Origin: Ministeria vibrans ATCC 50519
Lineage: Eukaryota; Protista; Filasterea
Direction of reading: 5' to 3'
Length of the DNA: 64,000 nt
NCBI GenBank assembly: GCA_943704425.1
Contig: CALSCP010000945.1
Span: 1-64,000, forward strand
The position numbers and the translations under genes are program-made. A model generated the notes under the pieces. It worked only from the letters and a program-made list of their open reading frames with translations, was not told the origin of the DNA and did no database searches. This document shows, piece by piece, positions 27,862-51,502 of the stretch (positions are counted from its first letter, which is position 1; every line of letters starts with the position of its first letter).

Positions 27862-30800
27862 ATGCGACGAGAGATTTTGTCTCTTGCCCTCGTGGCGTGC
27901 TGCCTCATCTCGTGGACACAGGGAGCAGTTCTCCCCAACGCTGCGACTTTGTTTCGCGATTCTCCTACCGCTCATCAGGTACCCTCTCCTCCTCGCTTTC
28001 ACCAGCTTAGCCCATTGTCTGTATCTTCCCGCCCCTCTCGTTTGCCTCTGACCCCAAGCGGCTCCACGCTCTCTCTTTTTTTTGCCGTCGGACGCTTTTT
28101 TTTTTCTGTTCAAATCTCCCTCTCATCGACAGTCGCAAATCATGCGCCTATGGCCTCTTGCCAAGAGCCCAGTCGCCTTTGCTTGAACTCAATAGAAGCA
28201 CCACACGCGTGTCAGCTTGCATTCCTACAAAGATATTCTTTCTTTTTCTTTTTTTTTTTTTTTATGAATCCATCTCACTTGTTCGCTTCGCTTCTGCTTC
28301 CCTCTCCACGTGCCTCCCATGTCCTGTTGTTGCTTGCCTCCGTGCCTTTCCACCCGGCGCACCCTGTTCCATCGTCTTGGTCGCATCCCCTCGCATGATT
28401 CATGCCGTGGAAGCCGTCTCTGCCGTTTGGCCGTGTCTTTTTTTCACAACACGAGCAGAAAAAAAAAAAAAAAAAAAAAAAGACACTGATGAGCGTAACT
28501 GCGAAAATCCGCTCGATCGTGTCGCCCATATGCTGCCCTTGTCCACCGACCTTGCAATTGTGTGGATGGTATTGTATTTGAGTTGGGAATATGCTGAGAG
28601 GTTCTTTTTTTTTTGAAAAGGGAAAGAAAAAAAAAACGGTCTCTGCTTTTTTTTTTTCTCTCCCTCTCTCCTCGAGCCTTGTGTTGCCTCAATCTCACAA
28701 CCCTTCCATGTTTGCCGGTTACATTTCAATGATTCAGTGTTCATTTGATTTGCTTGTTGATTGACAGCCCTTTTTTCCCTCTAATTTTTTTTTCTAACGT
28801 CCTTTGCGTCTCCTCTCCTCTCCTCTCCTCTCCTCTCCTCTTCTCTGCGACTCACACCCACTTTCGCCGTCCTTTACAGCGTCAACGCCGCGACAATACG
28901 TGTCCCGGCACAGGGTGCGCCAACGGCGGAACATGCAATGGCAACACTTGCGAGTGTTCCGTTGGGTACGGTGGCAACGTGTGCGACACCTTTGTAGGCT
29001 CGTGCAACGCGTCGCCATGCCAGAATGGCGGTACCTGCAGTGGTTCGGACGCGGCAGTCCTCTTCCAGAATGACGCTACGGATTTCTCCGACTTTAACGA
29101 GGTTCGTGGTGTGAGCTGTGGCGTCGAGTCACACACATTTGCCAACCGTCTCTTCCGCATCTACGAGCCCTGTGGCGACGCCAGCTACTCCGGCTCCTCG
29201 ATTGATATTTCTCATATCGAATTTGGAATCCAAAGCATGGATGGTGACGTGTCCGGCAAGTCGCTCACGCTGCGCCTTTCGTCCATTTCCTCTGGCAACG
29301 TCGCCAGCCCAGCCTTGTCACACCTCTCGACCCTTGCGACCACCACCGTGTCGCTGAGTACGCTTCAGACTGCCTACAACGTCGGTAAACAGTACCACTC
29401 GACGGCTTTTACCACTCCCGTGACAGTCACATGTGGCGATTATGTTGTGGCCGAGCTGAGCAGCCCCACGCTTGCCGGCAAGAATGCCCACGTTTTCTTT
29501 TCCATCAACGGTGCGGCGAACAGCGAGAGCGGTGTGTCCTACATCTCCGCCGAACCGTGCACGCAGACCGGAAAGGACCTGCTCACTCCCATCACCTCCA
29601 CCTTCCCCAACCTTGGTGACGCCATTGTCATCAATCTTCGCCTCGACATCGACTCCGCCACCGACTGTACCTGCACCACAGGTCTCACTGGTGATCGATG
29701 CGAGACTAACATTGACGACTGTGCCTCGAACCCGTGCGAGAACGGCGCCACGTGCAACGACGGTGTCACCTCGTACACTTGTAATTGTGCCGCCGGCTTT
29801 ACTGGCACTCATTGCGAGAACGATATTGACGACTGTGCCTCAAACCCTTGCGAGAGCGGTGCCACCTGCAACGACGGTGTCACCTCGTACACTTGTGACT
29901 GTGCCGCTGGATACAACGGCGACAACTGCGAGAACAACATTGACGACTGTGCCTCGAACCCGTGCGAGAGCGGTGCGACCTGCAACGACGGTATTACCTC
30001 GTACACTTGTGATTGTGCCGCTGGATACAACGGCGACAACTGCGAGAACAACATTGACGACTGCGCCTCGAACCCGTGCGAGAGCGGCGGCACCTGCAAC
30101 GACGGTGTCACCTCGTACACTTGTGATTGTGTTGCCGGATACAACGGCGACAACTGCGAGAACAACATTGACGACTGTGCCTCGAACCCGTGCGAGAGCG
30201 GTGCGACCTGCAACGACGGTATCACCTCGTACACTTGTGATTGTGCCGCTGGATACAACGGCGACAACTGCGAGAACAACATTGACGACTGTGCCTCGAA
30301 CCCGTGCGAGAGCGGCGGCACCTGCAACGACGGTGTCACCTCGTACACTTGTGACTGTGCCGCTGGATACAACGGCGACAACTGCGAGAACAACATTGAC
30401 GACTGTGCCTCGAACCCGTGCGAGAACGGTGCCACCTGCAACGACGGTGTCACCTCGTACACGTGCGACTGCATGGCTGGATACAACGGTGACAACTGCG
30501 AGAACAACATTGACGACTGTGCTTCGAACCCGTGCGAGAACGGTGCCACCTGCAACGACGGTATCACTTCGTACACGTGCGACTGCATGGCTGGATACAA
30601 CGGCGACAACTGCGAGAACGACATTGACGACTGTGCCTCGAACCCGTGCGAGAACGGTGGTACCTGCAACGACGGTATCACCTCGTACACGTGTGACTGT
30701 GTTGCNNNNNNNNNNNNNNNNNNNNNNNNNNNNNNNNNNNNNNNNNNNNNNNNNNNNNNNNNNNNNNNNNNNNNNNNNNNNNNNNNNNNNNNNNNNNNNN

Positions 30801-33800
30801 NNNNNNNNNNNNNNNNNNNNNNNNNNNNNNNNNNNNNNNNNNNNNNNNNNNNNNNNNNNNNNNNNNNNNNNNNNNNNNNNNNNNNNNNNNNNNNNNNNNN
30901 NNNNNNNNNNNNNNNNNNNNNNNNNNNNNNNNNNNNNNNNNNNNNNNNNNNNNNNNNNNNNNNNNNNNNNNNNNNNNNNNNNNNNNNNNNNNNNNNNNNN
31001 NNNNNNNNNNNNNNNNNNNNNNNNNNNNNNNNNNNNNNNNNNNNNNNNNNNNNNNNNNNNNNNNNNNNNNNNNNNNNNNNNNNNNNNNNNNNNNNNNNNN
31101 NNNNNNNNNNNNNNNNNNNNNNNNNNNNNNNNNNNNNNNNNNNNNNNNNNNNNNNNNNNNNNNNNNGATACAACGGCGACAACTGCGAGAACGACATTGA
31201 CGACTGTGCCTCGAACCCGTGCGAGAACGGTGGTACCTGCAACGACGGTATCACCTCGTACACGTGTGACTGTGTTGTCGGCTTCAACGGCGACAACTGC
31301 GAGAACGACATTGACGAGGTATTCTATTAATAACAGTTTTTCTCTTACCTCCTTAACTTTTGTTTGTTTGTAATAGTGCGCCTCTAATCCTTGCCAAAAC
31401 GGAGGCACGTGCGGCCAAGGCAAGCAGGTCACACTGACGGCTCGCCAGGACCTCGCGTCGTCATTGACTTTGTTGGTTCCTATCTCCGGCGCTCCTGGCG
31501 TCGGCGGCGGCACCATCGAAATTACCACGCGAGGCGACATCAGCCAGCTTAACGAATTCTTCACCGTCAGCGGCGGTAGCTCCTACTCGCAAAAATTCTT
31601 CAACTCGGTGTTCACTCAGGACTGCCTTGTTGAGACCGAGAAGTACTCTTTTACCCAGGCCAACTTTTTGGACGTTCTCAACAACGGCAACCTCGACTTT
31701 ACCGTCACACTCTCAGCTGATTTTGATCTGACTGTCTTCTGCGGCACCCAAGGCGACTTGATTGACTATGTTATCAAGTACGACGCTGTCGTGCCCGACC
31801 ATTACATGTGTACTTGTCCCGCAGGCTTCACTGGCACGCACTGCGAGCAAAACATCAACGAGGTATGCTTGTTCTGTTATTTTAATAATAATATTAATTA
31901 ATATGTGTGTAGTGCGCTTCGCAACCGTGCATGAATGGTGCGACCTGCAACGACGGGAGTGCCCAGTATTCTTGCACGTGTGTGGACGGCTTTGTTGGAG
32001 ATAACTGTGAGAGTGAAGTGGACGAGGTACGAATCCAAACAGGTTAATGCAACATAAAAAATTCAACCGTGCTGTTGTTGTTTTTTTTTTTCCTCTTGTT
32101 TATAGTGCGCCTCAAATCCCTGCGAGAATGGCGGTACTTGCAAAGATCTTGTCAATGCCTTTGAGTGCATCTGCTCCAACCCCTACGGTGGTGAGACGTG
32201 CGAGCTTCAGCGTGGACCTGATCCCTGCTTGTCGAGCCCATGCTCCAACGCCGCCACTTGCCATGTTCCGCGCCTTCCCACTGGCATGATGGCCATTGAG
32301 GAGTTTAACGAGTTTGCCATCAGCAACCCCAACATCAACGTCGGCATGCAGCAGATTGGCTGGCGCTTTCAAGTGCTCCAGACCATCTCCATCACGTCGC
32401 TTGGCTTCCTCGATATCGCTGCTATGCTAGGCCAAGGCGTCCTCCAGGACACACACCGCGTTGCCATCTACGACCACTCGGGTAACACGCCGACGCTTCA
32501 CGCCGAAGGGATTATCGACTCGACTACACCACTCGACCAGACTAACTGGGTCCGCTACACCGACCTGGTCTTTGGCACGCTCGTGCTCACCCCGGGAATT
32601 TACGTCCTTCAGGGCTTCATTCCTAGTCCTCGTGACCGCTACTTCGTCAGTGGCTACAACCTCACCACAAGTGCGGGTATTAACTGGACTGGTCGCTGTC
32701 AGTGTGTCGATTCCTACGGTACGGACGCCTGCAACGACTGCTCCACCGAGACTGTTGGTCGCTACGGCCCCGACTTTACTTACCAAATGGGTGATGCTTT
32801 CTCGTTCGAGTGTTCCTGCCACGCCGGCTTCGAAGGAACTCAATGTGAGACTGATACCAACGAGGTATGTGGGGAAAAAACAAAACAAAAAGAGTTCATA
32901 CTTTGCCTCATTCTCTTCCCCCTTCTTTTTTTTTAAAGTGTGACTCAATCCCGTGCCAAAACAGCGGTACATGCGACCAAGGCAACTCGCCCGACTTTGT
33001 TCAGTGCACTTGCGTGACGGGCTTCACCGGTCAGTGGTGCGAGACCAACATGGACGACTGTGTCTCCAACCCGTGCGAGAACGCGGGCACCTGCAACGAC
33101 GGTGTCGCTTCGTACACTTGTTCGTGTGTGACCGGTTTTACCGGCGCCCATTGCGAGACGGACATCAACGAAGTACCGCGAAAGAAAGAAAAAAAAGCAC
33201 AAACACACTCTCACACGCCGCACGTGTTCTTTTTCTATAGTGTCTCTCGTTCCCTTGCGCGAACGGTGCCACATGCGTCGAAGATTCGTCGCCTGATCTG
33301 TACAGCTGCTCGTGTATGGCCGGCTACACCGGTGACCATTGCGAGTCGGACATTGATGAGTGCGCTTCGGTCCCCTGCGAAAACGGCGGCACCTGCGTCA
33401 CCAACATTTTCATTAGTCAGAACAACATCATCGTCAACCTGGATCAGTTCACTTGCCTGTGCCCCCTTGGCTACACTGGCGATCAGTGTGAGACAGATAT
33501 TGACGAGTGTGCGTCGAGTCCGTGCCAGAACGGTGGTGTGTGCAGCGAGGGAAACCAGGCCAACTTCTACATGTGCGACTGCCCCGTTGGCTGGACCGGT
33601 ACCCAGTGTGAATCCGTCTACGGTACGGACACGTGCCTCTCGTCCCCCTGTACCAACGGAGGTACCTGCAACGTGCCCGGCCCCAACCCGCCGCCGGAGT
33701 ACGAGGCCGTCACCAGCTTTGGCAACTCGCTTCTGAGCAGCGACACGGGAGACCGTGTCATCGGCTACAAGTTTACCGTCAGCCAGACTGTCTCCATCAC

Positions 33801-36800
33801 CAAGCTGGGTCTGTTCAAGAGCCAGGCTGCCTTCAACCAGGATCACGTCGTCCAGGTGTACTCGTCGAGTGGCACACTCTACGCGCGTGCCCTCGTCACC
33901 GAGTCAAACTCGCAGCACAACGGTGACAACTTCTACTACACCGAACTCATCTGGGGCACGCTTGTGTTGCAGCCCGGCTCGTACCATGTGACTGCCTTCT
34001 TCGCCGATGCTTCCATCGATAACTACTGGGTGCAAGTGCTTAATATTCAGACGCACCCGCTCATCACTTGGGACGCCCGTTGCTACTGCGCCACCACCGA
34101 CCCGGAACACATGTGCACCAATTGCAACGCCGAGGAGATTGGCCGCTTTGGCCCCAACATCATTTTCGAGCTGGCCGATGTTTTCGACTTTACCTGCGAC
34201 TGTAGCGAGACCTTCACTGGACACATGTGCGAGACTGAGCTTATTCCATGCGATTCGCAACCGTGCACCAATGGTGGTACCTGCTCCAGCTCGGGCCTCG
34301 ACATCTCGTGCACCTGTGTCACGGGCTTTACTGGCTACCTGTGTGAGTCGGACATCGACGAGTGTGCTTCCAGCCCGTGCGAGAACGGCGGTTCCTGCAC
34401 CGAGGAGCTCTTCATTGGCAACGGTCAGACCATCTTGAATGCCAACTTCTTCGTGTGTCTGTGCCCCGACGGCTACTCAGGAGATCAATGCGAAAGTGAC
34501 ATTAACGAGTGTGCCTCGAACCCATGCCAGAACGGCGCCACCTGCAACAACCTTCTTGCCGCGTACTCATGTGCCTGTAGCAGCGGCTGGACTGGCGTCG
34601 ACTGCGAGAACAACTTTGACGAGTGCGCCTCGACACCGTGCGAGAACGGCGCCACCTGCAACGACCAAGTTGATGGCTACGCGTGCTCGTGCGCCGCCGG
34701 CTGGACCGACACTCACTGCGAGACCAACATTGACGAGTGCGTTTCGACACCGTGCGAGAACGGCGCCACCTGCAACGACCAAGTTGACGGCTACACGTGC
34801 TCGTGCGCCGCCGGCTGGACCAACACCCACTGTGAGACCAACATTGACGAGTGTGCTTCGAATCCTTGCGAGAACGGCGCCACCTGCAACGACCAGGTTG
34901 ACGGCTACACCTGCACCTGTGTCGTCGGGTGGACCGGCGCACGCTGTGAAAGTGATATTGACGAGTGTGCTTCCAGCCCGTGCGAGAACGGCGGTACCTG
35001 CACCGAGGAGCTCTTCATTGGCAACGGTCAGACCATCTTGAACATCAACTTTTTCGTGTGCCTGTGCCCCGACGGCTACTCAGGAGATCAATGCGAAAGT
35101 GACATTAACGAGTGTGCCTCAAACCCATGCCAGAACGGCGCCACCTGCAACAACCTTCTTGCCGCGTACTCATGTGCCTGTAGCAGCGGCTGGACTGGCG
35201 TCGACTGCGAGAACAACTTTGACGAGTGCGCCTCGACACCGTGCGAGAACGGCGCCACCTGCAACGACCAAGTTGATGGCTACGCGTGCTCGTGCGCCGC
35301 CGGCTGGACCGACACTCACTGCGAGACCAACATTGACGAGTGCGTTTCGACACCGTGCGAGAACGGCGCCACCTGCAACGACCAAGTTGACGGCTACACG
35401 TGCTCGTGCGCCGCCGGCTGGACCAACACCCACTGTGAGACCAACATTGACGAGTGTGCTTCGAACCCTTGCGAGAACGGCGCCACCTGCAACGACCAGG
35501 TTGACGGCTACACCTGCACCTGTGTCGTCGGGTGGACCGGCGCACGCTGTGAAAGTGATATTGACGAGTGTGCTTCCAGCCCGTGCGAGAACGGCGGTAC
35601 CTGCACCGAGGAGCTCTTCATTGGCAACGGCCAGTCCATCTTGAACATCAACTTTTTCGTGTGTCTGTGCCCCCAAGGCTACTCTGGAGATCAATGCGAG
35701 CAAGATATTGACGAGTGTGCCTCGAACCCATGCCAGAACGGGGCCACCTGCAACGACCACATTGCAATGTTCACATGCGACTGCGTGGTTGGATTCACCA
35801 GCGCTGATTGTGCCGTCAACATTGATGAGTGCGTTTCGACACCGTGCGAGAACGGCGCCACCTGCAACGACCAAGTTGACGGCTACACGTGCTCGTGCGC
35901 CGCCGGCTGGACCGACACTCACTGCGAGACCAACATTGACGAGTGCGTTTCGACACCGTGCGAGAACGGCGCCACCTGCAACGACCAAGTTGACGGCTTC
36001 ACGTGCTCGTGTGTCGCTGGGTTTATGGGAACGCACTGCGAGACCAACATTGACGAGTGTGCTTCAAACCCTTGCGAGAATGGTGGCACTTGCTCCGATC
36101 AGATCAATGGCTACACCTGCACGTGTGTGGCTGGCTGGACTGGCGGCGACTGTGAGACAGACTTTGACGAGTGTGTGTCGAAGCCGTGCCAGAATGGCGG
36201 TACCTGCACCGAGGAGCTCTTCATTGGCAACGGCCAGTCCATCATGAACATTGACTTCTTTGTGTGTGTCTGCCCCGCCGGCTTTGCTGGTGATCTGTGT
36301 GAGACGGACGTTGACGAGTGTGCTTCGAACCCGTGCCACACTGCGGCCACATGTACCGATGCCACCAATGGCTACTCGTGTGACTGCCCCGCAGGCTTCA
36401 CCGGCAGTGACTGCGCCACCGACATTGTCGAGTGCGCCTCAAACCCGTGTGAGAACGGCGCCACCTGCAACGAGGAGACGAACGGCTACACGTGCTCGTG
36501 CGCCGCCGGCTGGACCGACACTCACTGCGAGACCAACATTGACGAGTGCGTTTCGACACCGTGCGAGAACGGCGCCACCTGCAACGACCAAGTTGACGGC
36601 TACACGTGCTCGTGCGCCGCCGGCTGGACCGACACTCACTGCGAGACCAACATTGACGAGTGCGCCTCGACACCGTGCGAGAACGGCGCCACCTGCAACG
36701 ACCAAGTTGACGGCTACACGTGCTCGTGCGCTGCCGGCTGGACCAGCACCCACTGTGAGACGGACATAAACGAGTGTGCCTCGATTCCGTGCCAGAACGG

Positions 36801-39084
36801 TGGTACCTGCACCGAAGAGCTCTTCATTGGCAACGGTCAGTCTATCCCGAAACAAGACTTCTTTGTTTGCGTGTGCGCCGACGGCTTCAGCGGTGACCTG
36901 TGCGAGACCAACGAGGATGAGTGTGCCTCTAACCCATGCGCCGACGGAGAGTCGTGCGTGGACGGTGCGAATGGCTACTTGTGTGAGATGGCCGGCATCA
37001 CGACGGCGTGGCTTCTGGATTCCGCCATGAGCATCGCGGATGGCACGGACGCCGCCGTGGGTGCCACCGATCCATTTGACGAGCTCTTTGCGTACTCCTT
37101 TGACGGCACCGACCGTCGCGTGGTGGCCGCTGCAAACACTCCTACGGTCTTCAACAGCGGTATGTACCTGGGCTCGTGGGTGAAGCAGGCGGAGAATAAC
37201 CGTGGCTGGATTGCCATCAAGGCAGCAACCGCGCGCTACTTTGGTCTCTTCTCTTCGGGCACCAACGATCAGATTTGGTTCGAGCACTCGGCCGGCACGC
37301 TCAAGTTTTCGGGTGCGGTTGTCGACGATGATGAGTGGCACTATGTTGCCGCCACCTACAGCGTGTCGACATTGACGGTGCGCGTCTTTGTGGACGGTGT
37401 CGAGCTATCGCTTGTCAGCGGCACCAATCCGCTGACGGCTGCCCTTGACTTTGGTGGTTCCAGCGTGGACATTTTTGTTGGCCAGCGTCCTCCGGCCAAC
37501 TTTGGTCTGTCGGGCTCACTCTTTAGCACGGTTGTTTCGTCAAACCCCTCGCCTTCCATGTGTGCCTTTGCCGCACGCAAGCGTGACGCGGCCCAGCCCG
37601 CTGGTGGCGTGTGTGCCAACGGTGGCACCTGTGCCGACTCCAACGGTGGCTTCGTCTGCACTTGCTCGGGCAACTTTGATGGCCCGCTCTGTCGTGAGAG
37701 CACCCTCGTCGAAACTGTCTGGGCAATGGACACGGGCAAGAGCACTCAGGTGGGCAGCGTGACGGCCGGCGCGAGCGATCCCTTCTCCGGCACTAACGCC
37801 TTTGCATTTGGTGGCGCGGGTCATCTTGCCATTTCGGGCGCGGCCATGCCGACCGCTCCCATGTCCGGCTTTACCATTGGTTCGTGGGCCATGCAAACGA
37901 GCGGCACTTCTGGCTACATCATCGAGCACGGTCAGAGCTCAGATCTCCGTTACTACGGTATTTTCTCGCGTGGCTCCTCGGACACGCTCGAGTTCTACTA
38001 CCTTGTGTCGGGTGCCTCCAAGTACTCTGTCATCGCATTCACTGGTGCAACCATTGACGATGGCGAGTGGCATCACGTGGCCGCGACCTACGATGCCACC
38101 AATGACGCTGCTCACATGTTTGTTGATGGTGTCTCGCTGACGGCGACGGGTTCGAACAGCGTTGACGTGGCCGGCATTGACGAGGGCACTGGTGGTGCTC
38201 TTGTGGGCCGCCGTGTGCACAACAACGGTGCCTTCTCCTTTGGCTTCAGCGGCAGCCTCTTTGGATCGTTCATCACGAGCAAGGATTCGCGCAGCCTGTG
38301 CTCCATGGCCTCGCGCGGTTTTGACGGCGCCTCAACCGACGGTGTGTGCGGCGTGGGCGGTACATGCAGCGACAGCGTCGACATGGGCTTCACGTGCTCG
38401 TGTGGCTCGGGTCTGTCGGGCGTCACCTGCCGCGATGGTGCTTCCACGCCAGTGCAACTCATTGAGGCGGCAACCGCCGTGAACGGTGCCATAATCAATG
38501 GCAATATTGCCACCCTCGACGGTGGCATCCAGTACGTGCAGGTGCCATTTTCGTCGCTCCCGGCGCCCCAGCCCAACATGGGCAGCTTTGTCTTTGGTGC
38601 CACCGTGGCCGCGCAGACTGGAAACTTCTACGTGTTCTTCAACGGCATCAATGGCCTCGGGGCGAATCGCGAGTACGCGCTGTTTGTGGGCACCGATGGT
38701 TCCATCCGCTTCTTCTACAAGACGGTGTCGGGCGCCTTCAGCGCCAGCAACTTGGGTTCGTTCCCCATCGACGGCACTCTTGCACACATTGCGATCCGCT
38801 ACAACCAGGCCACAACAAGCGTGACTGTGTATGTTGATGGCGTCCAGACTGGTTCGGCGACACTCTCAGGTGCTCTTGCCTTTAGCCACAGTGGACCCCT
38901 GGTTCTCGGTGCGCGTCTGAGCACAAGCGGCACTGCCTCGAGTTTCGAGCTCGACGGTACCATCACAGGTGCTGTTCTGTCCACCGATGGCTCTTCCTCC
39001 ATGTGCCAGATGACTGGCGGAAGCGTGTGCTCAGGCGGCCTGTCTAACTGTAGCGACAACAACGGAGGCTACCAATGCCTTTGA
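27862..39084 (+). CDS. Giant secreted cbEGF-repeat protein, paralog 1 (signal peptide, EGF arrays with 4 inserted domains, 3 LamG-like domains, no TM); 7 exons, one internal gap
   Basis: Signal peptide [21 protein letters not shown]; introns 27979-28879, 31319-31376, 31863-31912, 32027-32105, 32865-32938, 33173-33240; dozens of DIDECxSxPCxNGxTC repeats; LamG-like [16 protein letters not shown]. Confidence 0.9.
29707..31318 (+). repeat. Near-perfect 114-nt coding tandem repeat (one cbEGF per unit), spanning gap 30706-31166
   Basis: Unit encodes [11 protein letters not shown](S/N)G(A/G)TCNDG(V/I)[18 protein letters not shown]. Confidence 0.95.
34340..36920 (+). repeat. 603-nt super-repeat (4 standard EGFs + 1 extended-loop EGF)
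   Basis: [11 protein letters not shown] begins at 34396, 34999, 35602, 36205 and 36808. Confidence 0.92.
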
Positions 39085-39832
39085 TTGCCACCATCAATTT
39101 TTTTTTTCGTTTATGCAGAGGAGAGAATGAGAGAGCGTTTTTAGAGTGGGCATTTTTTTTGAGAGTGCAGAGAGAGGAATATAAAAGAATACAAAAAGTC
39201 ACGTCTTTTTCATGAAGTGTTTATGTCTTGACAGCACAGAGCGTCGTTTTGTACTACCCGTGAAACCTTTCAAATAAACCAAAGAAAGAGCTGTACTCAA
39301 TGTCAAAACAAACAAGGATTTTACACAATAAAACTATTAGAAAAAAATTGACCACAAAAAGTAGTACAATGCTTCCGCTATTAGCTATAGGTAAGACAAT
39401 TGAGCGAGTGGGCTCATTGGGCGTTAGGCTAAGTGATGGCTAACCCTAAAAGTTTGTGTGTTCATAGATCCACTACAATTATAAAAACATGATTGTATTG
39501 ATGTTTGTTTAATACTTGAGATTTGAGACTTGAGAACTAACTGCTTAGAGCTATTTTGAGCTATTTCTATTTTCCAATTCGATTTACTATTTAGAGCTTA
39601 TTCAGTTATTCTTAGGCGATACGCCCTCGCGGGACTGAAAACGGACTAATTATTTTTCCTCGATCAACAAACCAAAAAAAAAATTAAAAATAATTATTAA
39701 AAATTAAAAAATCATTTTTATTTTATTCGTTTAGTGCAAACGGCTCAGTCGGACCCTTGTTTGATTTGAGTTGCGCTACTTGTTGTTCTTTTTACAACCC
39801 TTTTCAGCGTTGTCAAGAGAGAAACATCGAAA

Positions 39833-42800
39833 ATGCGTTTGGCACTGATAGGCACGGCATGCCTGCTCCTTGCTGGACTTTCTGCGGTCCATGGTACCGC
39901 CCTTGATACGCCTGTCATGATGACCACTCGTGGCATGCCTGAGTTTCGGCATCTCGTAAGCCATTTTGCACCGTTTCGCCGTGTCGTTTTTTTTTATCGT
40001 TGGCGCTCCCTTCCAAAATCGTCCTTGAGACATCCCCAACATCCCTGCTTGCCCCCTCCCCTGTGTCATACATCACTTTTGAATGCTACACGCCCCTCAT
40101 TCCCCCACTCCCTGACGTCGGCACGTCAATTTATGCCATCTCTTTAAGCCGAGACGTCTTTTTTTTATACATATTCAAAAAAAAAAGTCGCCGCCCATCG
40201 CGCCTCGTGACCCTCAACCTCGCCGAGAACCCTGGAGGCTCCATTTACTCTTTATTGGACACCACTCGCACTGTTTGGGCGTCGTTTTGAATAGCGTGTG
40301 CGGCGCAGTTCGAGATGCCGTGTGTGCGATTGCACAAAAAAAAAAAAAAAAAAAAAACGAACTCGTGCTAAGAACCATAATCCAACTCGTCAGGCGCATC
40401 ATTGGTATTGCGCCTTGCTCTTTGCGTGCTGCTCTTTAAGCGATCCAATATTCTAACACGTTGGCAACGACTTTTTTTTTTCTTTTCTTCTTTTTTCTCG
40501 TAACGCTCTCTTGAAAATCAACACTATCCACGCTTCATTCCATTGGCCATGTTACACCATCTCTTAACAATCTTTCCTCCCCTCCTCCCCTCTCTTCCGC
40601 ATGGGCTCACTTTCTCACCCCCTTTTCTTTTTTGTTTCCTCCCATTTTTTTTTCTACGAGTGTCATTCGCTGTCCTCCCAAAAGCACCGTCTCTGATCCA
40701 ATTCAGGCCCTGTTAGCATTCCACGCTTTATCATATTCCCTTGATTGGCAATGCTCTCCCGCAGAATCATTCATTAGTTTTTTTTTTTTTTTTTTTTTTT
40801 TTTGACGCTGATGTCCTTTTTTTCTCGCCATCTCACGTACTGTCGTAGGCACGCCGTGGCTTTACATGCGGCTCGGAAGAGTGTCTCAATGGCGCCTCTT
40901 GTTCCGCCAACCTGTGCGTCTGCTCCGAAGGCTACACTGGAGCGGATTGCTCCGTGAACATTGGCGGTTGCAGCGGAGGCTCTGCCTGCGAGAACTCCGG
41001 CACCTGCACTGGCGTCGACTCGCTTGTGCAGTCGCAAAACACCGCCAATGACTTCTCGGCCTTTGACGAGGGAGTTGGTTGTGCGTCGACGGACCGCTCG
41101 TTCGCCAACCAGTTCTACCGTTTCTACGACGTGTGCAGCGAAGCCAACTTTGAAGGCCAGTCGCTCACCATCACCCACGTCGAATTTGTGGCAGCCAGTG
41201 CGACTGGATCACCCAACAACGGTGACCAACTCACCGTGTCTCTTCACGAGTTCGAGCAACAAGGAAACTCACCGGCGCTTAGCGACCTCGGCAACATTCT
41301 CGCGTCAAAGAACGTCCCTTTCACCACCCTTGTTCCGCTCTCGACCTCGGCCGAGACTCAGTATGTGAGCGTTGCTTTGACCACGCCCGTGGTGGTCAAC
41401 TGCGGTGACAGCATTGCCGTCAAGCTGAGTCACCCTCAGCTGTCATTCCGCTTTTTCTTTGGCTCCAACACCGCTGGCGACGAGTCTTCGCCTGCCTACC
41501 ATCTCTCACCGTGCACCAGCAACCAGCTGGTCGACTACTCCAACTTTGTGGAATCCCTCAACGTCGAGCCGCACGCCACCCACTTCCCTATCAACATTCG
41601 CCTCGACAGCAGCCAGGCCCTCGAGTGTGCCTGTACCGCTGGCTTCGAGGGTGACCGCTGCCAGAGCGACATCAACGAGTGCGACTCGAACCCCTGCGAG
41701 AATGGCGGCACATGTCACGACGGCGCCGCCTCGTACTCTTGCAGCTGTGCTGCTGGCTTCACTGGCGACATCTGCGAGACCAACATCGACGACTGTGTCT
41801 CGGACCCCTGTGACAACGCTGGCACCTGCACCGACGGTGTCAACTCGCACACTTGCTCGTGTGTCTCGGGCTACACCGGTGACAACTGCGAAACGAACAT
41901 TGATGACTGCACCGCGAACAGCTGCCAAAACAGCGGCACTTGCTACGACGGTGTTGATTCGGTCACGTGCGACTGCGCGTCAGGCTTCACTGGCGACATC
42001 TGCGAGACCAACATTGACGACTGTGTCTCGGGCCCCTGTGACAACGGTGCCACATGCAATGACGGTGTTGATTCGTACACGTGTGATTGTGCCACGGGCT
42101 TTGAGGGTCTTGATTGCGAGACCAACATTGATGACTGCGCCGGGAGCCCGTGCAACAACGGTGGTAGCTGTACAGACGGTACTGCCACGTTCTTTTGTGA
42201 CTGTCCCGCAGGCTTGACTGGCAACACTTGTGACGACGACGTTGCCGAGTGCGACTCGAACCCTTGCGAGAATGGCGGCACATGTCACGACGGTACCAAC
42301 TCGTTCTCTTGCAGCTGTGCTGCTGGCTTCACTGGCGACATCTGCGAGACCAACATCGACGACTGTGTCTCGGACCCCTGTGACAACGCTGGCACCTGCA
42401 CCGACGGTGTCAACTCGTACGCTTGCTCGTGTGTCTCGGGCTACACCGGTGACAACTGCGAAACGAACATTGATGACTGCACCGCGAACAGCTGCCAAAA
42501 CAGCGGCACTTGCTACGACGGTGTTGATTCGGTCACGTGCGACTGCGCGTCAGGCTTCACTGGCGACATCTGCGAGACCAACATCNNNNNNNNNNNNNNN
42601 NNNNNNNNNNNNNNNNNNNNNNNNNNNNNNNNNNNNNNNNNNNNNNNNNNNNNNNNNNNNNNNNNNNNNNNNNNNNNNNNNNTGACTGCACCGCGAACAG
42701 CTGCCAAAACAGCGGCACTTGCTACGACGGTGTTGATTCGGTCACGTGCGACTGCGCGTCAGGCTTCACTGGCGACATCTGCGAGACCAACATCGACGAC

Positions 42801-45800
42801 TGTGTCTCGGGCCCCTGTGACAACGCTGGCACCTGCACCGACGGTGTTGATTCGTACACGTGTGATTGCGTCTCGGGCTACACCGGTGACGACTGCGAGA
42901 CGAACATTGATGACTGCACCGCGAACAGCTGCCAAAACAGCGGCACTTGCTACGACGGTGTCAATTCGGTCACGTGCGTCTGCGCGTCAGGCTTTACTGG
43001 CGACATCTGCCAGACCAATATCGACGACTGTGTCTCGGGCCCCTGTGACAACGGTGCCACGTGCAATGACGGTGTTGATTCGTACACGTGTGATTGTCCC
43101 GCGGGCTTCACCGGCGAAAGCTGCGAGACCAACATTGACGATTGCGACCCTAACCCTTGTCAGAACTCGGGTACCTGCAGCGACGCCGTCAACAACTTCG
43201 TGTGCAGCTGCATTGCGGGCTATACGGACACGACGTGCACGACCAACATTGACGACTGTGTGCCCAACCCTTGCAAGAACGGCGCCCCCTGTACCGACGG
43301 AGTCACCTCGTATGTCTGTAATTGTCCCTCTGGCTTCACGGGAGACGATTGTGAGACCAACATTGATGATTGTGTCTCGGGCCCTTGCGATAACGGTGCC
43401 ACTTGCACTGACGGTGTCGATTCGTACACGTGCAACTGTGCCGCAGGTTTTGAGGGTAGCGATTGCGAGACAGACATTGACGATTGTGCAACGGATCCCT
43501 GTCAAAACGGCGGTTCTTGCACCGACCAGGTCAACGACTACACTTGCGTGTGCGCTACTGGCTACGCGGGTAGCGATTGCGAGACTAACATCAATGACTG
43601 TGCCACGTCACCCTGCGACAATGGCGCTACCTGCAACGATGGCGTTGCCACGTACACTTGCGACTGTGTTGCTGGCTACACAGGGAGCGACTGTGAGACC
43701 AACATTGATGACTGTGCTCACTCACCGTGCCAAAATAGTGGCAGTTGCATTGATCAAGTGGATGGCTATTTTTGCAAGTGTGCTCCCGGGTTCGAAGGAG
43801 ACGACTGTGAGACCAACATTGACGAGTGCCAAGGTGGCCCGTGTGACAATGGCGGTACCTGCTACGACGGAGTGAATAGCTATTCTTGCATGTGCTCAAT
43901 GGGTTGGACTGGCAGTAGCTGCGATACCAGTGTGGACGAGGTAAAGAAAATTAAATGACATGAAAATGCCTAAAATAATCATCATAATTTTTCGATATAG
44001 TGTGCCTCGAACCCTTGTGAGAACGGTGGTACCTGCTACGATCGGCACCTGGCCTACTCTTGCGATTGTCACTTCCCGTACGGCGGACAGAACTGCCACC
44101 TGCACCATGGACCCGAACTGTGCGACTCATCGCCCTGTGTCAACGATGCGCCTTGCAACGTCGAGCTGCCCGACGTCCAGTCGCATCCGGCTGTTCTATC
44201 GTTCACCTCAGTTATCGAGAGTTCCACCACCAACACCCCCAGCCAGTCGCTCATTGGCTGGCGCTTTGACGTCGACCAAACCATCTCAATCAGCCGCATT
44301 GGTCTGCTCGATCTTGATTCACCCGGTCTCCAGGAATGGCACGAGGTCACAATTTTCCGAAACGACTCAACCATTCTCGGTGTGGCCTGGCTCGGTCCCA
44401 CCGCGTCGGCACCCGAGGGCCAGACTGTCGACACGGACTCGTCCTCCGTGAAGACTTGGCACACTTTTGGTGACCTCACGCTTACTCCCGGCTCCTACTA
44501 CATCCAGGCCACACTTGGCGGGGGTTTGGACCGCTACCACATTTCGTCGACTGAACTCAAAAGCTCGACGGGTGTCACTTTCCGCAGCCGTTGCCAGTGC
44601 GTTAACGCCAGTCCTACGACCCTCTGCACCACGTGCAACGAAGAGGCTTTTGGTCGCTATGGCCCCAACTTTGATTTTGTCCTGGGCGACCTTTGGTCTC
44701 CCGAGTGCAACTGCTCGTACGGTTTCACTGGCGAGCGCTGCGAGACGGACATTGATGAGTGCAGTTCGGACCCCTGCATGAACGGCGGCTCCTGCATCGA
44801 AGGATTTGACATTGCCTCGTTTGGCACCTACGAGTGCTTCTGCATTGCGGGCTACACCGGCGATCACTGCGAGACCAACATTGACGACTGTGTCTCGGAC
44901 CCTTGCGAGAACGATGGAACTTGCCTCGACTCTGCCGACGCGCCCAACCTGTTCACATGTACTTGTGCCAACGGCTACACCGGTGATAGCTGCCAGTCGG
45001 AGGTTGACGAGTGTGCCCCAGCGCCCTGTCAAAACGGCGGTACCTGCGCGGACGATGTGGGTTTCTACACCTGCACCTGTGTCAGCGGCTTTGTTGGCCC
45101 CGATTGCGAGACGGAGGTTGACGAGTGTCTGTCAAATCCATGCAAGAACGGTGGATCTTGCATGGATATGCCAAGTGGTTTCACCTGCTCCTGTGCTAGC
45201 GGCTTTACCGGTGAAACTTGCCAGACCAACATTGACGATTGTCCGTCCAACCCGTGTGAGAACGGTGGCACTTGCATCGATGGCGTCAACAGCTACACGT
45301 GCTCGTGTGGCTGCGGCTACACTGGAGAGATTTGCACTGAAATCTTTGGCGCTGACACGTGCGCATCGGACCCGTGCGAGAACTCGGGAACGTGCTCCTC
45401 TTGTGTCTCCCTTCCCACCGGCAACCTGGCCGTCACGTCGTTTGGCTTCACCTTTAAGAGCAGTGACACTGGTTCGCGAACCATCGGCTCCAAGTTCTCC
45501 ATCTCCGAGACAGTCACTGTGACAGGTCTGGCCCTGGTTCGAACCGAATCGTCCTTCGACTCGAGCCACTTCATCCAAGTCGTGAACGCTGACAATGTTA
45601 ATGCTGGTCCCATTGTCTGGGGCGCCCTCACCGAGGACAATTCCAAGGAAGAGTCGAACGGTTTTTACTCGACATCTGAAATTGCAGGCACGCTTGTTCT
45701 CAGCCCTGGTTCTTACATTGTATCGGCGCACTTCCCTTCGGGCACCGCCGATAACTACTATGTCGAGGCAGCCTCAATTGGCTTCGCTAGCCAACATTTC

Positions 45801-48800
45801 ACCCAAAACGAGCGTTGCTTCTGCTCCGGTACCAACACGACTGATGTGTGCACTACGTGCAACAACGAAGCCATTGGTCGCTTTGGCCCGCACATTATGT
45901 ACGTCTCAGGTGACAGCTTTTCCTACTCCTGTGATTGCCCCGCCTCTTTCACGGGCGATTCGTGCGAAACCGAGATTGGCGCCTGCGACTCCAATCCGTG
46001 TCTCAACGGCGCCACTTGCAACAATGCATTCCCTGGCTACACGTGTACTTGTATTGCTGGATACACCGGTATCGATTGTGGGCAAGACATCAACGAGGTA
46101 CACTGACTGGAGTAGTTATTTTTCGTTTGACTGTAATTATTTTTTTCTTAGTGTGCCTCGTCCCCGTGCGAGAATGGTGGATCCTGCAAGAACGAGCTCG
46201 ACAAGTTTTCGTGCGACTGCGAAACCGGCTACACTGGTGACGTCTGCGAGACAAACATTGATGACTGTGTTAGCAACCCATGTGAGAATGGTGGCACATG
46301 CTCTGATGGCTTGGCCAGCTATCTTTGCCAATGCGTCTCAGGTAAGACAGGCACAGACTGCTCGCAGGAAGTCGACGACTGCTCGTCCAACCCGTGTGAG
46401 AACAGTGGCACGTGCATCGACGGCGCGAACAGCTACACTTGCTCTTGCCCCGCCGGCTTCAGCGGTGTCCACTGTGAGACAAACATCGACGAGTGCGCCG
46501 GAAACCCATGCCTGAACAGCGGTACATGTACCGATGGCATCAACCAGGCGATCTGCGATTGCCATGAAGGCTTCGCTGGACTCACTTGTGAGACAGAAAT
46601 CATGCCCTGCTCCTCGAACCCTTGCCAGAACGCTGGTACTTGCGATTCCACTTTGGCCACGCACGTGTGCTACTGTGTCGCTGGTTACACTGGTCCATTC
46701 TGTGAGTCTAACATTGATGAGGTAAAAAAAATTTATTATAAAAATAATTATAAGCAATCATATCAAAATAATCATTGTTGATATTAATTAAAATCTCCTT
46801 TTTAGTGTGTCTCGAACCCTTGTGAGAATGGTGGTACCTGTGTGGACGGTGTTAATGAGTTCGTTTGCGACTGTCCGCTTGGATGGTCGGACGAGCACTG
46901 CGAGTTCAACTTGAACGAATGCCTGTCGAACCCGTGCAAGAACGGCGGTACTTGCATGGACGGTCTCGCGTCTTACACATGCTCGTGCGCACTTGGATTC
47001 ACGGGTGACGATTGCGCGACTAACATTGACGACTGCACCTCAAACCCATGCGAGAATGGTGCCACTTGCAACGACGGTGTCAACTCATACACGTGCGACT
47101 GTATGGCTGGATACAACGGCGACAGCTGCGAGAACAACATTGATGACTGTGCCTCGAACCCGTGCGAGAGCGGCGCCACGTGCAACGACGGTGTTACCTC
47201 GTACACGTGCGACTGTATGGCTGGATACAACGGCGACAACTGCGAGAACAACATTGACGACTGCGCCTCGAACCCGTGCGAGAGCGGCGGCACCTGCAAC
47301 GACGGTGTCACCTCGCACACTTGTGACTGTGTTGCCGGATACAACGGCGACAACTGCGAGAACAACATCGACGAGTGCGCTTCGAACCCGTGCGAGAACG
47401 GCGCCACCTGCAACGACGGTATCAACTCATACACGTGCGACTGCATGGCTGGATACAACGGCGACAACTGCGAGAACAACATTGACGACTGCGCCTCGAA
47501 CCCGTGCGAGAGCGGCGCGACCTGCAACGACGGTGTCACCTCGTACACTTGTGATTGTGCNNNNNNNNTGGATACAACGGCGACAACTGCGAGAACAACA
47601 TTGACGACTGCGCCTCGAACCCGTGCGAGAGCGGCGCGACCTGCAACGACGGTGTCACCTCGTACACTTGTGATTGTGCCGACGGATACAGCGGCGACAA
47701 CTGCGAGAACAACATTGACGACTGTGCCTCGAACCCGTGCGAGAACGGTGCCACCTGCAACGACGGTATCACCTCGTACACTTGTGATTGTGCCGCTGGA
47801 TACAACGGCGACAACTGCGAGAACAACATTGACGACTGTGCCTCGAACCCGTGCGAGAGCGGCGCCACGTGCAACGACGGTGTCACATCGTACACTTGTG
47901 ACTGTGCTGCCGGATACAACGGCGACAACTGCGAGAACAACATTGACGACTGCGCTTCGAACCCGTGCGAGAACGGCGCCACCTGCAACGACGGTGTCAC
48001 ATCGTACACTTGTGACTGTGCTGCCGGATACAACGGCGACAATTGCGAGAACAACATTGACGAGTGCGCTTCGAACCCGTGCGAGAACGGCGCCACGTGC
48101 AACGACGGTATCAACTCGTACACATGCGACTGCATGGCTGGATTCAACGGCGACAACTGCGAGAACAACATTGACGAGTGCGCTTCGAACCCGTGCGAGA
48201 ACGGCGCCACCTGCAACGACGGTGTCACCTCGTACACTTGCAACTGTGCTGTGGGCTTCTCGGGCGACGCGTGCGCCACCAACGACGACGACTGCGCCTC
48301 GAACCCGTGCGAGAACGGCGCCACCTGCAACGATGGTGTCACCTCGTACACTTGCGACTGTGCTGTGGGCTTCTCGGGCGACGCGTGCGCCACCAACGAC
48401 GACGACTGCGCCTCGAACCCGTGCGAGAACGGCGCTACCTGCAACGACGGCATGAACTCGTACACTTGCGACTGTGCTGTGGGCTTCTCGGGCGACACAT
48501 GCGCCACCGAAGACGATGAGTGTCTCTCGAACCCTTGTGAGAATGGCGGTACCTGTAGCGACCAGGTCAATTCATTCTCGTGCGTCTGCGCCGATGGTTT
48601 CCTGGGTGACACCTGTGCCGACCAGCTTACGGCTCTGTGCAATTCATCGCCCTGCCACAACGGAGGTACTTGCACCGGTGTGGGCCAGGTTTTCACTTGC
48701 GTGTGTGCAAGTGGTTTCACCGGCACGCTTTGCAACCAGGATGTGGACGAGTGTGACTCTTCACCCTGTATGAACGGCGGTGAGTGCTCGCAGGGAGCCG

Positions 48801-51502
48801 CAATCAATGCCCGAGTTGTCGACATCACGACTGCCGGCTCGGAGAACGTCCTCGACGAAGGCGACCTCATTCCCTTCTCAACCAAGTCGTTTGCCCAGCG
48901 TCAGCAGATTCTTGTTCTCGCCCATGAGTTTGCGGATCAGGCCATCGAGGCCGGTTCCGTCATCTCTTCGCTTGAGCTGGAAATCACCACTCCGGACACA
49001 CGCACGTACAAGAATGTCCAGATTCAGCTGCTCGCCTCATCGCTGACTACCATCGCCACGCTCCAAGATATGAGCAGTGCCACCACCGTGTTTACCGCTT
49101 CTTCATTTGATATCCAACAATCGGGCCGCGTCACCTTCACCTTCAACACCAACTTTGTCTACGACGGTTCCTCGGCAGTCATTGTGCAGTTTTGCCACCA
49201 GGCCGACGCGGCCAGTGAGGTGGGCTTAAGCGAAGTGCTCTCCATGCCTGTGCGTCTCCACGCCACCATTATCACCAACCTCTTTGTCAGCACCAAAGCG
49301 GACAGCACACTTGTGGGCTCCATCTGCGACCAGTCGACCCCTGCCAACGCCAAGCCCGTGCGCCCCGTCATTTACTTTGGTATTGCATCGAGCTTCACGC
49401 CCAACTTCTATGAGTGCGAGTGTCCCTCCTCGTTCACGGGTGCACAGTGCGAGACGGACATGACCTTTACGCCCATCACGACCATCTGGCCCTTCGACGA
49501 CGGCAAGAACACCGGTCTGCCCTCGGTCAACGTCGTCGATCCCTTCGGCACCTCGACCGCGCTTGACTTTGATGGCTCCTCCACCACCGTCGTCGCTGAG
49601 GTCACCGCAATGCCAACGTCGCCCTTCGACGGCTTCTCGTTTGGTGCTTGGGTCAAGTCGGACGCCACCAAGAACGGCTGGATCATGATCCAGGACCAGT
49701 CTGGTCAACGCGACTACGGTCTGTACCACTTACTCTCAGCAAACCAGCTGTGGGTGCAGTTTACTGTGGGCACCTCGCAAACGACACTCAAATATGAGGC
49801 TGAGCTGGGCATCAACTGGCACCACATTGTCGTGACCATTGGTTCATCTGTGACCGTCACCCTTGACGGTGTGCAGCTTAGCGTTGCTGCAGGCGACGAC
49901 ACCAACGTGGGTTCTGTCAACGAGGGCTCAGGTGGCGTGCGGATTGGTACACGCGCCGGCTCCAGCAGCTTCTTCTTTGACGGTTCCATCTTCAGCGCGT
50001 TCGTCACCAGGTCCGATAGCTTCTCGCACTGCGCATTTGCCTCGCGCGGCCTCAACGGCGACTCCACCAGCGGCGTGTGCTCGGGTCAGGGAACGTGTAA
50101 CGACGAGGCGGTCGGCTTCACGTGCTCGTGCAACACAGGCTTCACCGGCGCTCGCTGCGAGGAGACTCTTGCTCCCGTCACCACCATTTGGCCGTTTGAT
50201 ACTGGCAAGAACACGGGTCTGCCCTCGTCGCTCACTACCGATCCATTTGGCAGCTCAAACGCCCTCGTCTTTGATGGCGCCTCCTCGGTGGTTGCTCTTG
50301 CGTCGGAAATGCCCGAGCAGCCGTTTGGCGGCTTTGCCTTTGGCCTGTGGGTGCAGAGCACCTCCAAGGACGCGTGGCTCCTTATCAATGACAACGGCGG
50401 CAGTCGCCACTACGGTGTCCTCTCCAAGGCGTCCATCGGTCAGCTGTGGGTGCAGTACACCAACAGCGGTGGATCGCGCGTCACCATCAAGTACCCGGCC
50501 ATTGTGGACGACGGCGACTGGCACCACATTGTGGTTGTGTATGACGAGTCAAGTATCTCTCTTTTCCTCGACGGTGTCAAACTGTCGCCGAGCAGTGGGA
50601 CGGAGACAGGCATTGCGTTTGTCAGCGAGGGCAGTGGTGCTGTGCGCATGGGCACACGTGCCGGTTCCAGCAGCTTCTTCCTCAATGGTGCGATGTTTGG
50701 TGCCTTTGTCACAAGCAACGACGAGTCCCTGTCGCTGTGCGCCATGGCGTCGCGTGGCCTCAACGGCGAGTCAACTGCCGGCGTGTGCGGTGTGGGTACC
50801 TGCCAGGAGACGGCCAACGGTTACACGTGCGACTGTCCCTCGAACGCGTCGGGTGACCGCTGTGAGCTTACTAGCGGCGTTGAGCTGGTGTCTCAGGTGA
50901 CCCAGTCCACCGGTGCTACCATCAACGGTGACACCGTTGTCTTTGACAGCGCCACCTCGTTTGCAATTGTGCCGTCGTCGGCTCTGCCTGCGCCCCAGCC
51001 CAACATGGGAAACTTTGTCTTTGGCACTTTTATCACTGCGCCCAACACTGGCTACCTCTTCTTCAAGGGGCCCACCGGCCTTCAGCGTCGCGTCGCGCTT
51101 TTCTTGAAATCCACGGGCGACCTTGACTTCTACTACCGCGCCGTGGGTCTGTCGGGCAACAAGGTGGCGCGGATCGGCACAATCTCGTTGAGCACCAAAC
51201 ACCACGTTGCCATTCGCTATGACTCGGCCTCCGCAACCGTCACTGGCTTTATTGACGGTGTAGCCCAGTCGCCGAAGACGCTGTTGGCGGCTATTGACTT
51301 TGGTGTCACGGAGGACTATGTCCTGGGTGCGCGTCGCAACAACGCTGGCACCGCCTACCAGTTTGGTCTGTTGAGCGGCACTCTGCAGCGCGCTGTGCTC
51401 GCGACTGGTGCCCCCAGCCTCTGTTCCATTGCGTCCGACGACCTCGCCTGCCCCGGTAGCTCCATCTGCACTGACAATGGTCTCGGCTACACCTGTGTCT
51501 AA
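39833..51502 (+). CDS. Giant secreted cbEGF-repeat protein, paralog 2 (signal peptide, EGF arrays with 4 inserted domains, 3 LamG-like domains, no TM); 5 exons, two internal gaps
   Basis: Signal peptide [21 protein letters not shown]; introns 39956-40848, 43941-44000, 46098-46151, 46722-46805; shares the N-terminal insert and the LamG motif [13 protein letters not shown] with paralog 1. Confidence 0.9.
41680..43100 (+). repeat. Internal EGF block duplications in paralog 2 (570-nt and 228-nt offsets)
   Basis: [16 protein letters not shown] recurs 570 nt apart; [18 protein letters not shown] occurs at least four times. Confidence 0.85.
47025..48500 (+). repeat. 114-nt coding tandem repeat, near-identical to the 29707-31318 array
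   Basis: Same nucleotide unit (ggatacaacggcgacaactgcgagaacaacattgacgactg...). Confidence 0.93.

Follow-up and report, generated by a model that had tools for sequence, protein, structure and literature searches.

Can a rod of EGF modules carry whole domains inside the modules themselves and still run on as a continuous rod? This question is raised by a stretch of 64,000 nucleotides (nt) from the protist Ministeria vibrans ATCC 50519 (contig CALSCP010000945.1; hereafter the window), which holds two tandem eukaryotic genes on the plus strand, here called paralogs 1 and 2, both encoding giant secreted EGF rods. In eight EGF modules of these proteins, a segment of domain size lies between the third and the fourth cysteine (Cys3 and Cys4). 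The best explanation of the locus as a whole is, in our view, that it encodes secreted EGF rods with eight domains nested at the Cys3-Cys4 hairpin, with the host EGFs closed around them, which serve as multivalent adhesion or matrix scaffolds. We put the probability of this reading at about 0.75.

The pattern is seen most directly in the spacing of the cysteines. Among the readable EGFs of both genes, the distance between Cys3 and Cys4 is 8 residues in 62 modules, 10-13 in a few, 19 in seven and 132-209 in eight. The standard module (C-x4-C-x5-C-x8-C-x-C-x8-C, matched by Pfam EGF) thus has the 8-residue spacing that a preliminary description of this DNA had given, and the eight inserts reported there were found where it had placed them, in frame, stop-free, directly behind C-x4(5)-C-x5-C and directly ahead of C-x-C-x8-C. 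We sorted them into types A to D, with C' as a second form of type C. Paralog 1 contains, on the plus strand as all modules described here, a split EGF with a type A insert at 29003-29701 (insert 29039-29665, 209 residues, four cysteines), known from its translation; a type B module at 31377-31844 (insert 31413-31808, 132 residues, two cysteines), known from its translation, a spliced contig and an AlphaFold2 (AF2) model; a type C module, DUF4082-like, at 32226-32846 (insert 32262-32810, 183 residues, four cysteines), read in translation and in RNA-type contigs; and a likewise DUF4082-like type C' module at 33634-34230 (insert 33670-34194, 175 residues, four cysteines), documented by its Pfam DUF4082 match, an RNA-type contig and an AF2 model. 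The four modules of paralog 2, all read from the translation, are of type A at 40969-41661 (insert 41008-41625, 206 residues, four cysteines), type C at 44121-44741 (insert 44157-44705, 183 residues), type C' at 45360-45965 (insert 45396-45929, 178 residues) and type D at 48752-49450 (insert 48788-49414, 209 residues, two cysteines). Identity is 39% between the type A inserts of the two paralogs (E 1e-43) and 30-42% among the four inserts of type C.

Six-frame searches of the 29.7-Mb assembly with the four insert families yielded at least 85 matches on more than 20 contigs (type D 16, type C 23, type A 4 and at least 44 full-length type B modules). All 52 distinct modules that were read in the genome show the same nesting, with a domain flanked by two half-EGFs. 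Across modules the half-EGFs keep all their cysteines, whereas identity between inserts has dropped to 22-32%. A chance origin of the pattern is excluded, since the inserts form conserved families and the same nesting recurs in every one of the 52 modules on other contigs. The whole type B module of the window corresponds to one phase-0 exon (31377-31862); hence, with phase-0 introns at its borders, the composite module of split EGF and insert may plausibly have spread by exon duplication. On another contig (C904, 49454-67593), a unit in which a split EGF with a type B insert stands between two EGFs was seen in about 20 tandem copies, many of them encoded by exons of their own with about 290 codons each. 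The array resembles one very large gene, or a cluster of genes, made almost wholly of nested modules.

Proposed closure of the split EGF modules

The preliminary description had also proposed that the two halves of each split module co-fold into one EGF on a continuous rod. This part of the claim is supported indirectly, by cysteine parity, by a conserved aromatic residue, by the confidence of the half-EGFs in the type B model and by the precedent of laminin treated below. Insert cysteines are even in number in nearly all 52 modules (two in types B and D, four in type A, two or four in type C), whereas one cysteine would stay unpaired in each half-EGF alone. The aromatic-x-Cys4 motif of the second hairpin strand, with the aromatic residue two positions before Cys4, is conserved. 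Positions 1-20 of the module profile match residues 1-20 of single Notch EGF chains of 40 residues, and its last 18 positions match residues 20-37. In the AF2 model of type B, the half-EGFs reach a predicted local distance difference test score (pLDDT) of 70-81, with strands 11-15 and 142-146 leading into and out of the sandwich. In the models of types B and C', the sandwich starts 4-6 residues past Cys3 and ends 4-7 residues ahead of Cys4.

Following this argumentation, a complete globular domain would sit in each of the eight modules at the tip of the major β-hairpin between Cys3 and Cys4. The N-half (Cys1 to Cys3) and the C-half (Cys4 to Cys6) would close into one EGF round the base of the insert by means of the Cys2-Cys4 disulfide, the EGF rod would remain continuous, and the sandwich would jut sideways on two connectors of 3-7 residues. 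The mounting proposed here is the same as that of the L4 domains on the LE rods of laminin and perlecan.

Several points weigh against this reading. In the type C' model, the EGF flanks were predicted with low confidence (pLDDT 37-58), and a split-chain complex test of this module (EGF(n-1) plus N-half versus C-half plus EGF(n+1)) gave a score of 0.12 as compared to a mark of 0.34, which is no evidence either way. The calcium-binding motif D/N-x-D/N-E/Q precedes Cys1 in 70 of the 96 readable N-halves and is missing from the split modules of types A and C. Several split modules thus do without it, all of them are devoid of Asp/Asn after Cys3, and with these calcium-binding residues missing, local stiffening of the rod may be lost exactly at the positions of the knobs. 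Laminin arms, for their part, kink at L4. In addition, RNA support is limited to paralog 1 (inserts B, C and C'), and for types A and D, whose relatives remained undetected, the role as binding domains is an assumption.

Might the cysteine-rich pieces, then, be N- and C-terminal caps belonging to each inserted domain, EGF-like only in looks, with the rod interrupted at every insert? The poorly predicted EGF parts of the type C' model, the split-chain test, which lent closure no support, and the loss of the calcium-binding residues of the hairpin would all agree with such caps. We nevertheless judge this explanation unlikely, as the same two caps would have to be present on four unrelated insert families, share their spacing and the consensus motifs for O-glucose and O-fucose with adjacent intact EGFs, agree with the N- and C-terminal parts of single Notch EGF chains, and each leave one cysteine unpaired when taken by itself.

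Nature of the inserts and their transcripts

What are the domains that these split EGFs carry? Clearest is the case of type C. A profile search returned 1,001 proteins at E <0.001; the best 150 of these 1,001 were mostly bacterial, about 210 residues long and composed of a signal peptide, DUF4082 and a PEP-CTERM-like tail, along with a few long low-cysteine proteins, and the only EGF-nested matches among them (P0001 and P0008) both come from the Ministeria genome itself. The best type C copy of the window, C', scored 27.9 bits on Pfam DUF4082 (PF13313) against a cut-off of 28.4 (E 2.6e-6); other copies gave weaker or no matches, and none of the inserts of any type had a Pfam match at the gathering cut-off. 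Three of the proteins matched by the type C profile (P0005, P0006 and P0020) themselves reach 33-57 bits on PF13313, and homology is hence reciprocal. A word-based search with the type C' region of its 1,947-residue exon product found nothing. In the AF2 model of type C', the insert has a pLDDT above 90, and a VIA structure comparison ranked PHR domains at the top (Z 11.4 and 11.2), followed by lectin and carbohydrate-binding module (CBM) sandwiches. Judged by sequence and model, type C is a DUF4082-like β-sandwich, otherwise found in small bacterial proteins of the PEP-CTERM type.

The type C copies of the window show one peculiarity, an extra internal C-x-C-x8-C-x2-C cluster right before the conserved G-R-[FY]-G-P motif, read from the sequence at approximately 32676-32720, 34081-34125, 44571-44615 and 45807-45851. 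Only two cysteines are found at this site in type C members elsewhere in the genome, and none in most bacterial relatives. The spacing of the cluster is LE-like, and Pfam EGF_laminin matches it weakly (E 0.003, below the cut-off). One could therefore think of the type C hosts as eight-cysteine LE modules as found in laminin, with Cys4 to Cys8 supplied by the internal cluster, and of the whole as true relatives of LE/L4. This appears very doubtful. In other type C members of the genome, only two cysteines are present internally and C-x-C is missing there, although the terminal C-x-C-x8-C is kept; the G-R-[FY]-G-P-N-F motif behind the cluster belongs to the bacterial DUF4082-type domain; and the cluster lies within the sandwich that was modelled with high confidence, while Laminin_B found no match. 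Accordingly, LE modules were rejected as type C hosts, the LE-like cluster being missing in family members that keep the terminal half-EGF.

For type B, an AF2 model of the module, built with 22 paralogs, reached a pLDDT of 83 and a predicted template modelling score of 0.72, with values of 85-92 within the insert. Residues 16-138 of this model match jelly-roll sandwiches, namely a BcsB domain (Z 9.3), the furin P domain (8.9) and CBM35 (6.9). The models support the view that inserts B and C' are complete folded domains, and at least types B and C are predicted to be jelly-roll β-sandwiches of the lectin, CBM or PHR type. Searching protein databases with the type B profile returned only P0151, which is 100% identical to contig C904 of the genome, and plain EGF fragments.

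Relatives of types A and D were detected neither in Pfam nor in the PDB or the databases searched. A scan of bacterial and archaeal genomes revealed no relative of type A, PDB profile searches with types B and D recovered EGFs only, and a word-based search with the type D region of its 1,310-residue exon product found nothing. A metagenome scan with type D including its EGF halves gave 12 loci, all of them plain EGF arrays and none nested. In the ESM Atlas, type A was linked to unnamed phage and bacterial clusters (0.94) and type D obtained 0.81, values that we treat as leads only. How distinct are the four types? The preliminary description had called them apparently unrelated, and this holds for their sequences: in profile-profile comparison none is detectably similar to another, and for the pairs A/C, D/C, A/D and B/D similarity was not significant outside the common EGF C-half. 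It holds less well for the folds, as types B and C were both modelled as jelly-roll β-sandwiches.

That the inserts are exonic was borne out for paralog 1, where spliced contigs keep inserts B, C and C' while five introns are removed. Contigs of three runs (X1, X2 and X3) are devoid of introns 31863-31912, 32027-32105, 32865-32938 and 33173-33240, and one of them has the upstream exon joined at 31377. The introns removed around the retained inserts measure 50-79 nt. Spliced contigs run through all of insert B (31375-31831) and all of insert C' (33502-34260), and RNA-type contigs cover most of insert C (32104-32291 and 32450-32862). Run X10 retains the introns and was thus taken to be DNA. An alternative, suggested by the resemblance of type C to bacterial proteins and by the assembly gaps of the region, would be that the inserts stem from intron retention, chimeric assembly or bacterial contamination and do not belong to the proteins. 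It is already effectively refuted, as every insert is an open, stop-free frame of 132-209 codons, spliced contigs of two separate studies join inserts to EGF exons, the inserts of the paralogs are conserved at the protein level, the gaps lie elsewhere, and the identical type of junction is present on more than 20 contigs of the genome.

Gene structure, EGF arrays and assembly gaps

The nested modules are parts of proteins of about 3,300-3,500 residues each, composed of a signal peptide, some 45 or more EGF modules of the Notch/fibrillin type, most of them calcium-binding, and three C-terminal LamG domains; no membrane anchor was seen in the translation of either paralog. Paralog 1 (27862-39084) has seven exons, ends with TGA and comprises about 3,330 codons including a gap. 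Its exons, assigned from translations, are 27862-27978 (signal peptide), 28880-31318, 31377-31862, 31913-32026, 32106-32864, 32939-33172 and 33241-39084. Paralog 2 (39833-51502) consists of five exons likewise assigned, 39833-39955 (signal peptide), 40849-43940, 44001-46097, 46152-46721 and 46806-51502, with the stop codon TAA and about 3,490 codons. For paralog 2, a start at approximately 40954 is too late and has to be corrected: the true start at 39833 is that of the gene's own signal-peptide exon, about 1 kb upstream of the first EGF exon.

In both paralogs the signal-peptide exon comes first and is followed by an intron of about 900 nt (893 nt, GT..AG, in paralog 2). The remaining introns of both genes are 50-84 nt long and of phase 0, each placed so that a Glu codon ends one exon and Cys1 of the following EGF opens the next. 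In paralog 1 all introns are GT..AG and of phase 0; the first is deduced, and those at 31319-31376, 31863-31912, 32027-32105, 32865-32938 and 33173-33240 are absent from RNA-type contigs. The introns of paralog 2 were assigned by analogy with paralog 1, from GT..AG borders, phase 0 and the Glu|Cys junction. Database searches with the proteins of the window were made exon by exon, and the large last exons gave Pfam EGF matches with E 7.5e-150 and 2.1e-84, along with matches to hEGF and EGF_CA.

The three LamG/ConA-like domains lie at 36990-39000 in paralog 1 (plus strand; Pfam Laminin_G_3, E 5.6e-29) and at 49451-51400 in paralog 2 (plus strand; E 9.1e-26), in three stretches in each protein and with scores of 101.7 and 91.2 bits compared to a cut-off of 27.6. 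Both proteins terminate one residue past the fourth cysteine of a truncated EGF (39060-39084 and 51475-51502), and a four-cysteine truncated EGF of this kind also stands in front of the first LamG of paralog 1. Cys1 of the EGF that follows a LamG is located at the end of that LamG in every case, and behind the first LamG of paralog 1 it is found 16 residues ahead of Cys2. Nesting of the LamG domains could be ruled out, as they are preceded by a four-cysteine truncated EGF, followed by a complete EGF, and are hence placed between modules.

Between 34340 and 36920 on the plus strand, paralog 1 contains a super-repeat of 603 nt, each unit encoding five EGFs, with successive copies identical at 587/603 (the first two), 517/603 and 474/603 positions. 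The fifth EGF of each unit has a 19-residue hydrophobic Cys3-Cys4 hairpin, an extension of intermediate size at the very site of the large inserts. Shorter units of 114 nt form further tandem arrays, in which a unit of one paralog can agree with one of the other at up to 111/114 positions (29699-30701 and 46897-48479), yet the inserts share only about 39% protein identity. So close a match of the units speaks for gene conversion or homogenisation in recent times, and the near-identical repeats are what caused the assembly gaps. These gaps, at 30706-31166, 42586-42682 and, the shortest, 47561-47568, all concern 114-nt EGF arrays: every run of N abuts or sits within one, and the right flank is the repeat unit at 40/40 positions, 2-3 nt past the left break. 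As the right flanks are in repeat register, the sequence missing at each gap is an integral multiple of the 38-codon unit, and it is the arbitrary length of the N runs that makes the frame seem to change at gaps two and three. The inserts are untouched, with none within 240 nt of a gap; the copy number of the EGFs is uncertain.

Among the 96 readable N-halves, the O-glucose consensus of the Notch type (C-x-S-x-P/A-C) is present in 80 and the O-fucose consensus (C-x4-S/T-C) in 92. The genome contains genes of the O-FucT (PF10250) and GT90 (PF05686) families (contigs C498, C372, C2228 and C2085), and the EGFs of the window may thus be O-glycosylated as in animals.

Proposed function and comparison with known systems

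But why should a protist hang whole domains on its EGF rods? The sandwich knobs could recognise surface ligands, for instance glycans, and the LamG domains could tie the scaffold to a partner at the cell surface or in the matrix. Several lectin-like knobs together with three LamG domains on a secreted rod fit multivalent adhesion or matrix proteins, and we suggest that both proteins serve as secreted multivalent extracellular adhesion, lectin or matrix scaffolds. The composite module of split EGF and insert would have been duplicated through the genome.

A bolder idea, which we put forward tentatively and with the odds somewhat against it, is that this lineage turned the Cys3-Cys4 hairpin of ordinary EGFs into a general mounting site, at which at least four unrelated families became nested, one of them a bacterial DUF4082-type domain possibly acquired by gene transfer, and that exon duplication then spread about 100 modules over many giant secreted or surface proteins. 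If true, this would amount to a combinatorial display system for lectins or adhesins with no described counterpart beyond the single-family case of laminin and perlecan. Apart from this bolder idea, the findings show that the mounting of a globular domain on an EGF-type rod, as in laminin, is peculiar neither to LE modules nor to the basement membranes of animals, and that ordinary EGFs tolerate several insert folds. For those who engineer domain insertions into small disulfide-rich scaffolds, the modules provide test cases made by nature. The findings also suggest that a protist equipped with animal-type genes has a large and so far unexplored family of extracellular proteins. The DUF4082-type sandwich, otherwise bacterial, may bear on the recognition of prey or surfaces, and the modules could help with the still unknown function of the laminin L4 and LF domains.

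How do these proteins compare to known systems? Nesting of a domain within a domain in a small disulfide-rich extracellular module is familiar from the integrin beta subunit, in which beta-I is inserted in hybrid and hybrid in PSI. The integrin case differs from the window proteins, however, in its host fold and inserts and in lacking a repeated rod. With the calcium-binding EGF arrays of Notch, Crumbs and fibrillin, the proteins share the EGF family, the calcium-binding motif, the sites for O-glucose and O-fucose and LamG domains between EGFs. In those arrays other domains stand between EGFs, whereas here whole domains are found inside the hairpin; we know of no protein of the Notch, Crumbs or fibrillin type with a whole domain in this position. 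Searches of the literature on split or interrupted EGF modules and on DUF4082 brought up nothing relevant. Bacterial DUF4082 (PF13313) proteins are homologous to type C and have, according to the models, the same β-sandwich; among the best 150 of 1,001 matches, their domains occur alone or in tandem and never EGF-nested, while the copies of the window add the four-cysteine cluster.

The closest likeness is that to laminin. The LF domain of laminin beta, located between LE5 and LE6, is a CBM35-like sandwich that sits, as is proposed for the inserts here, at the side of an uninterrupted EGF-type rod, but follows a truncated LE and thus stands between modules, while the inserts described here lie within the Cys3-Cys4 hairpin (PMC5338690). 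L4 and LF are both CBM35-like sandwiches of unknown function, and in LE modules the L4 domain occupies the Cys3-Cys4 interval, at the periphery of a rod that stays continuous (PMC5338690, PMC6744579); the disulfide pattern of the LE module is left intact by L4, which remains peripheral on the continuous LE array (PMC6744579). The claim of the preliminary description that no family with this design had been described cannot be upheld, as L4 nested in LE already uses it (PMC5338690, PMC6744579). The L4 domains of laminin alpha and gamma thus resemble the eight modules of the window and the 52 read in the genome in having a globular domain between Cys3 and Cys4 of an EGF-type module, and laminin, as the proteins described here, contains LamG domains in addition. 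In perlecan domain III, too, L4 is nested in an LE module. The differences concern both host and insert. L4 is hosted by an LE module of eight cysteines, including a 7-8 loop, whereas the hosts found here are six-cysteine EGFs of the Notch/fibrillin type. A laminin chain has one or two nested modules, and these are of a single insert family; the proteins described here have up to four each, the genome gives at least 85 matches, and at least four insert families, unrelated in sequence, are employed. Laminin_B (PF00052) matched none of the inserts and nothing in the genome, a genome search that gave no match in control genomes either. The design is hence already known from laminin; new are its hosts, which are ordinary EGFs, the use of several insert families and the dozens of copies in one genome.

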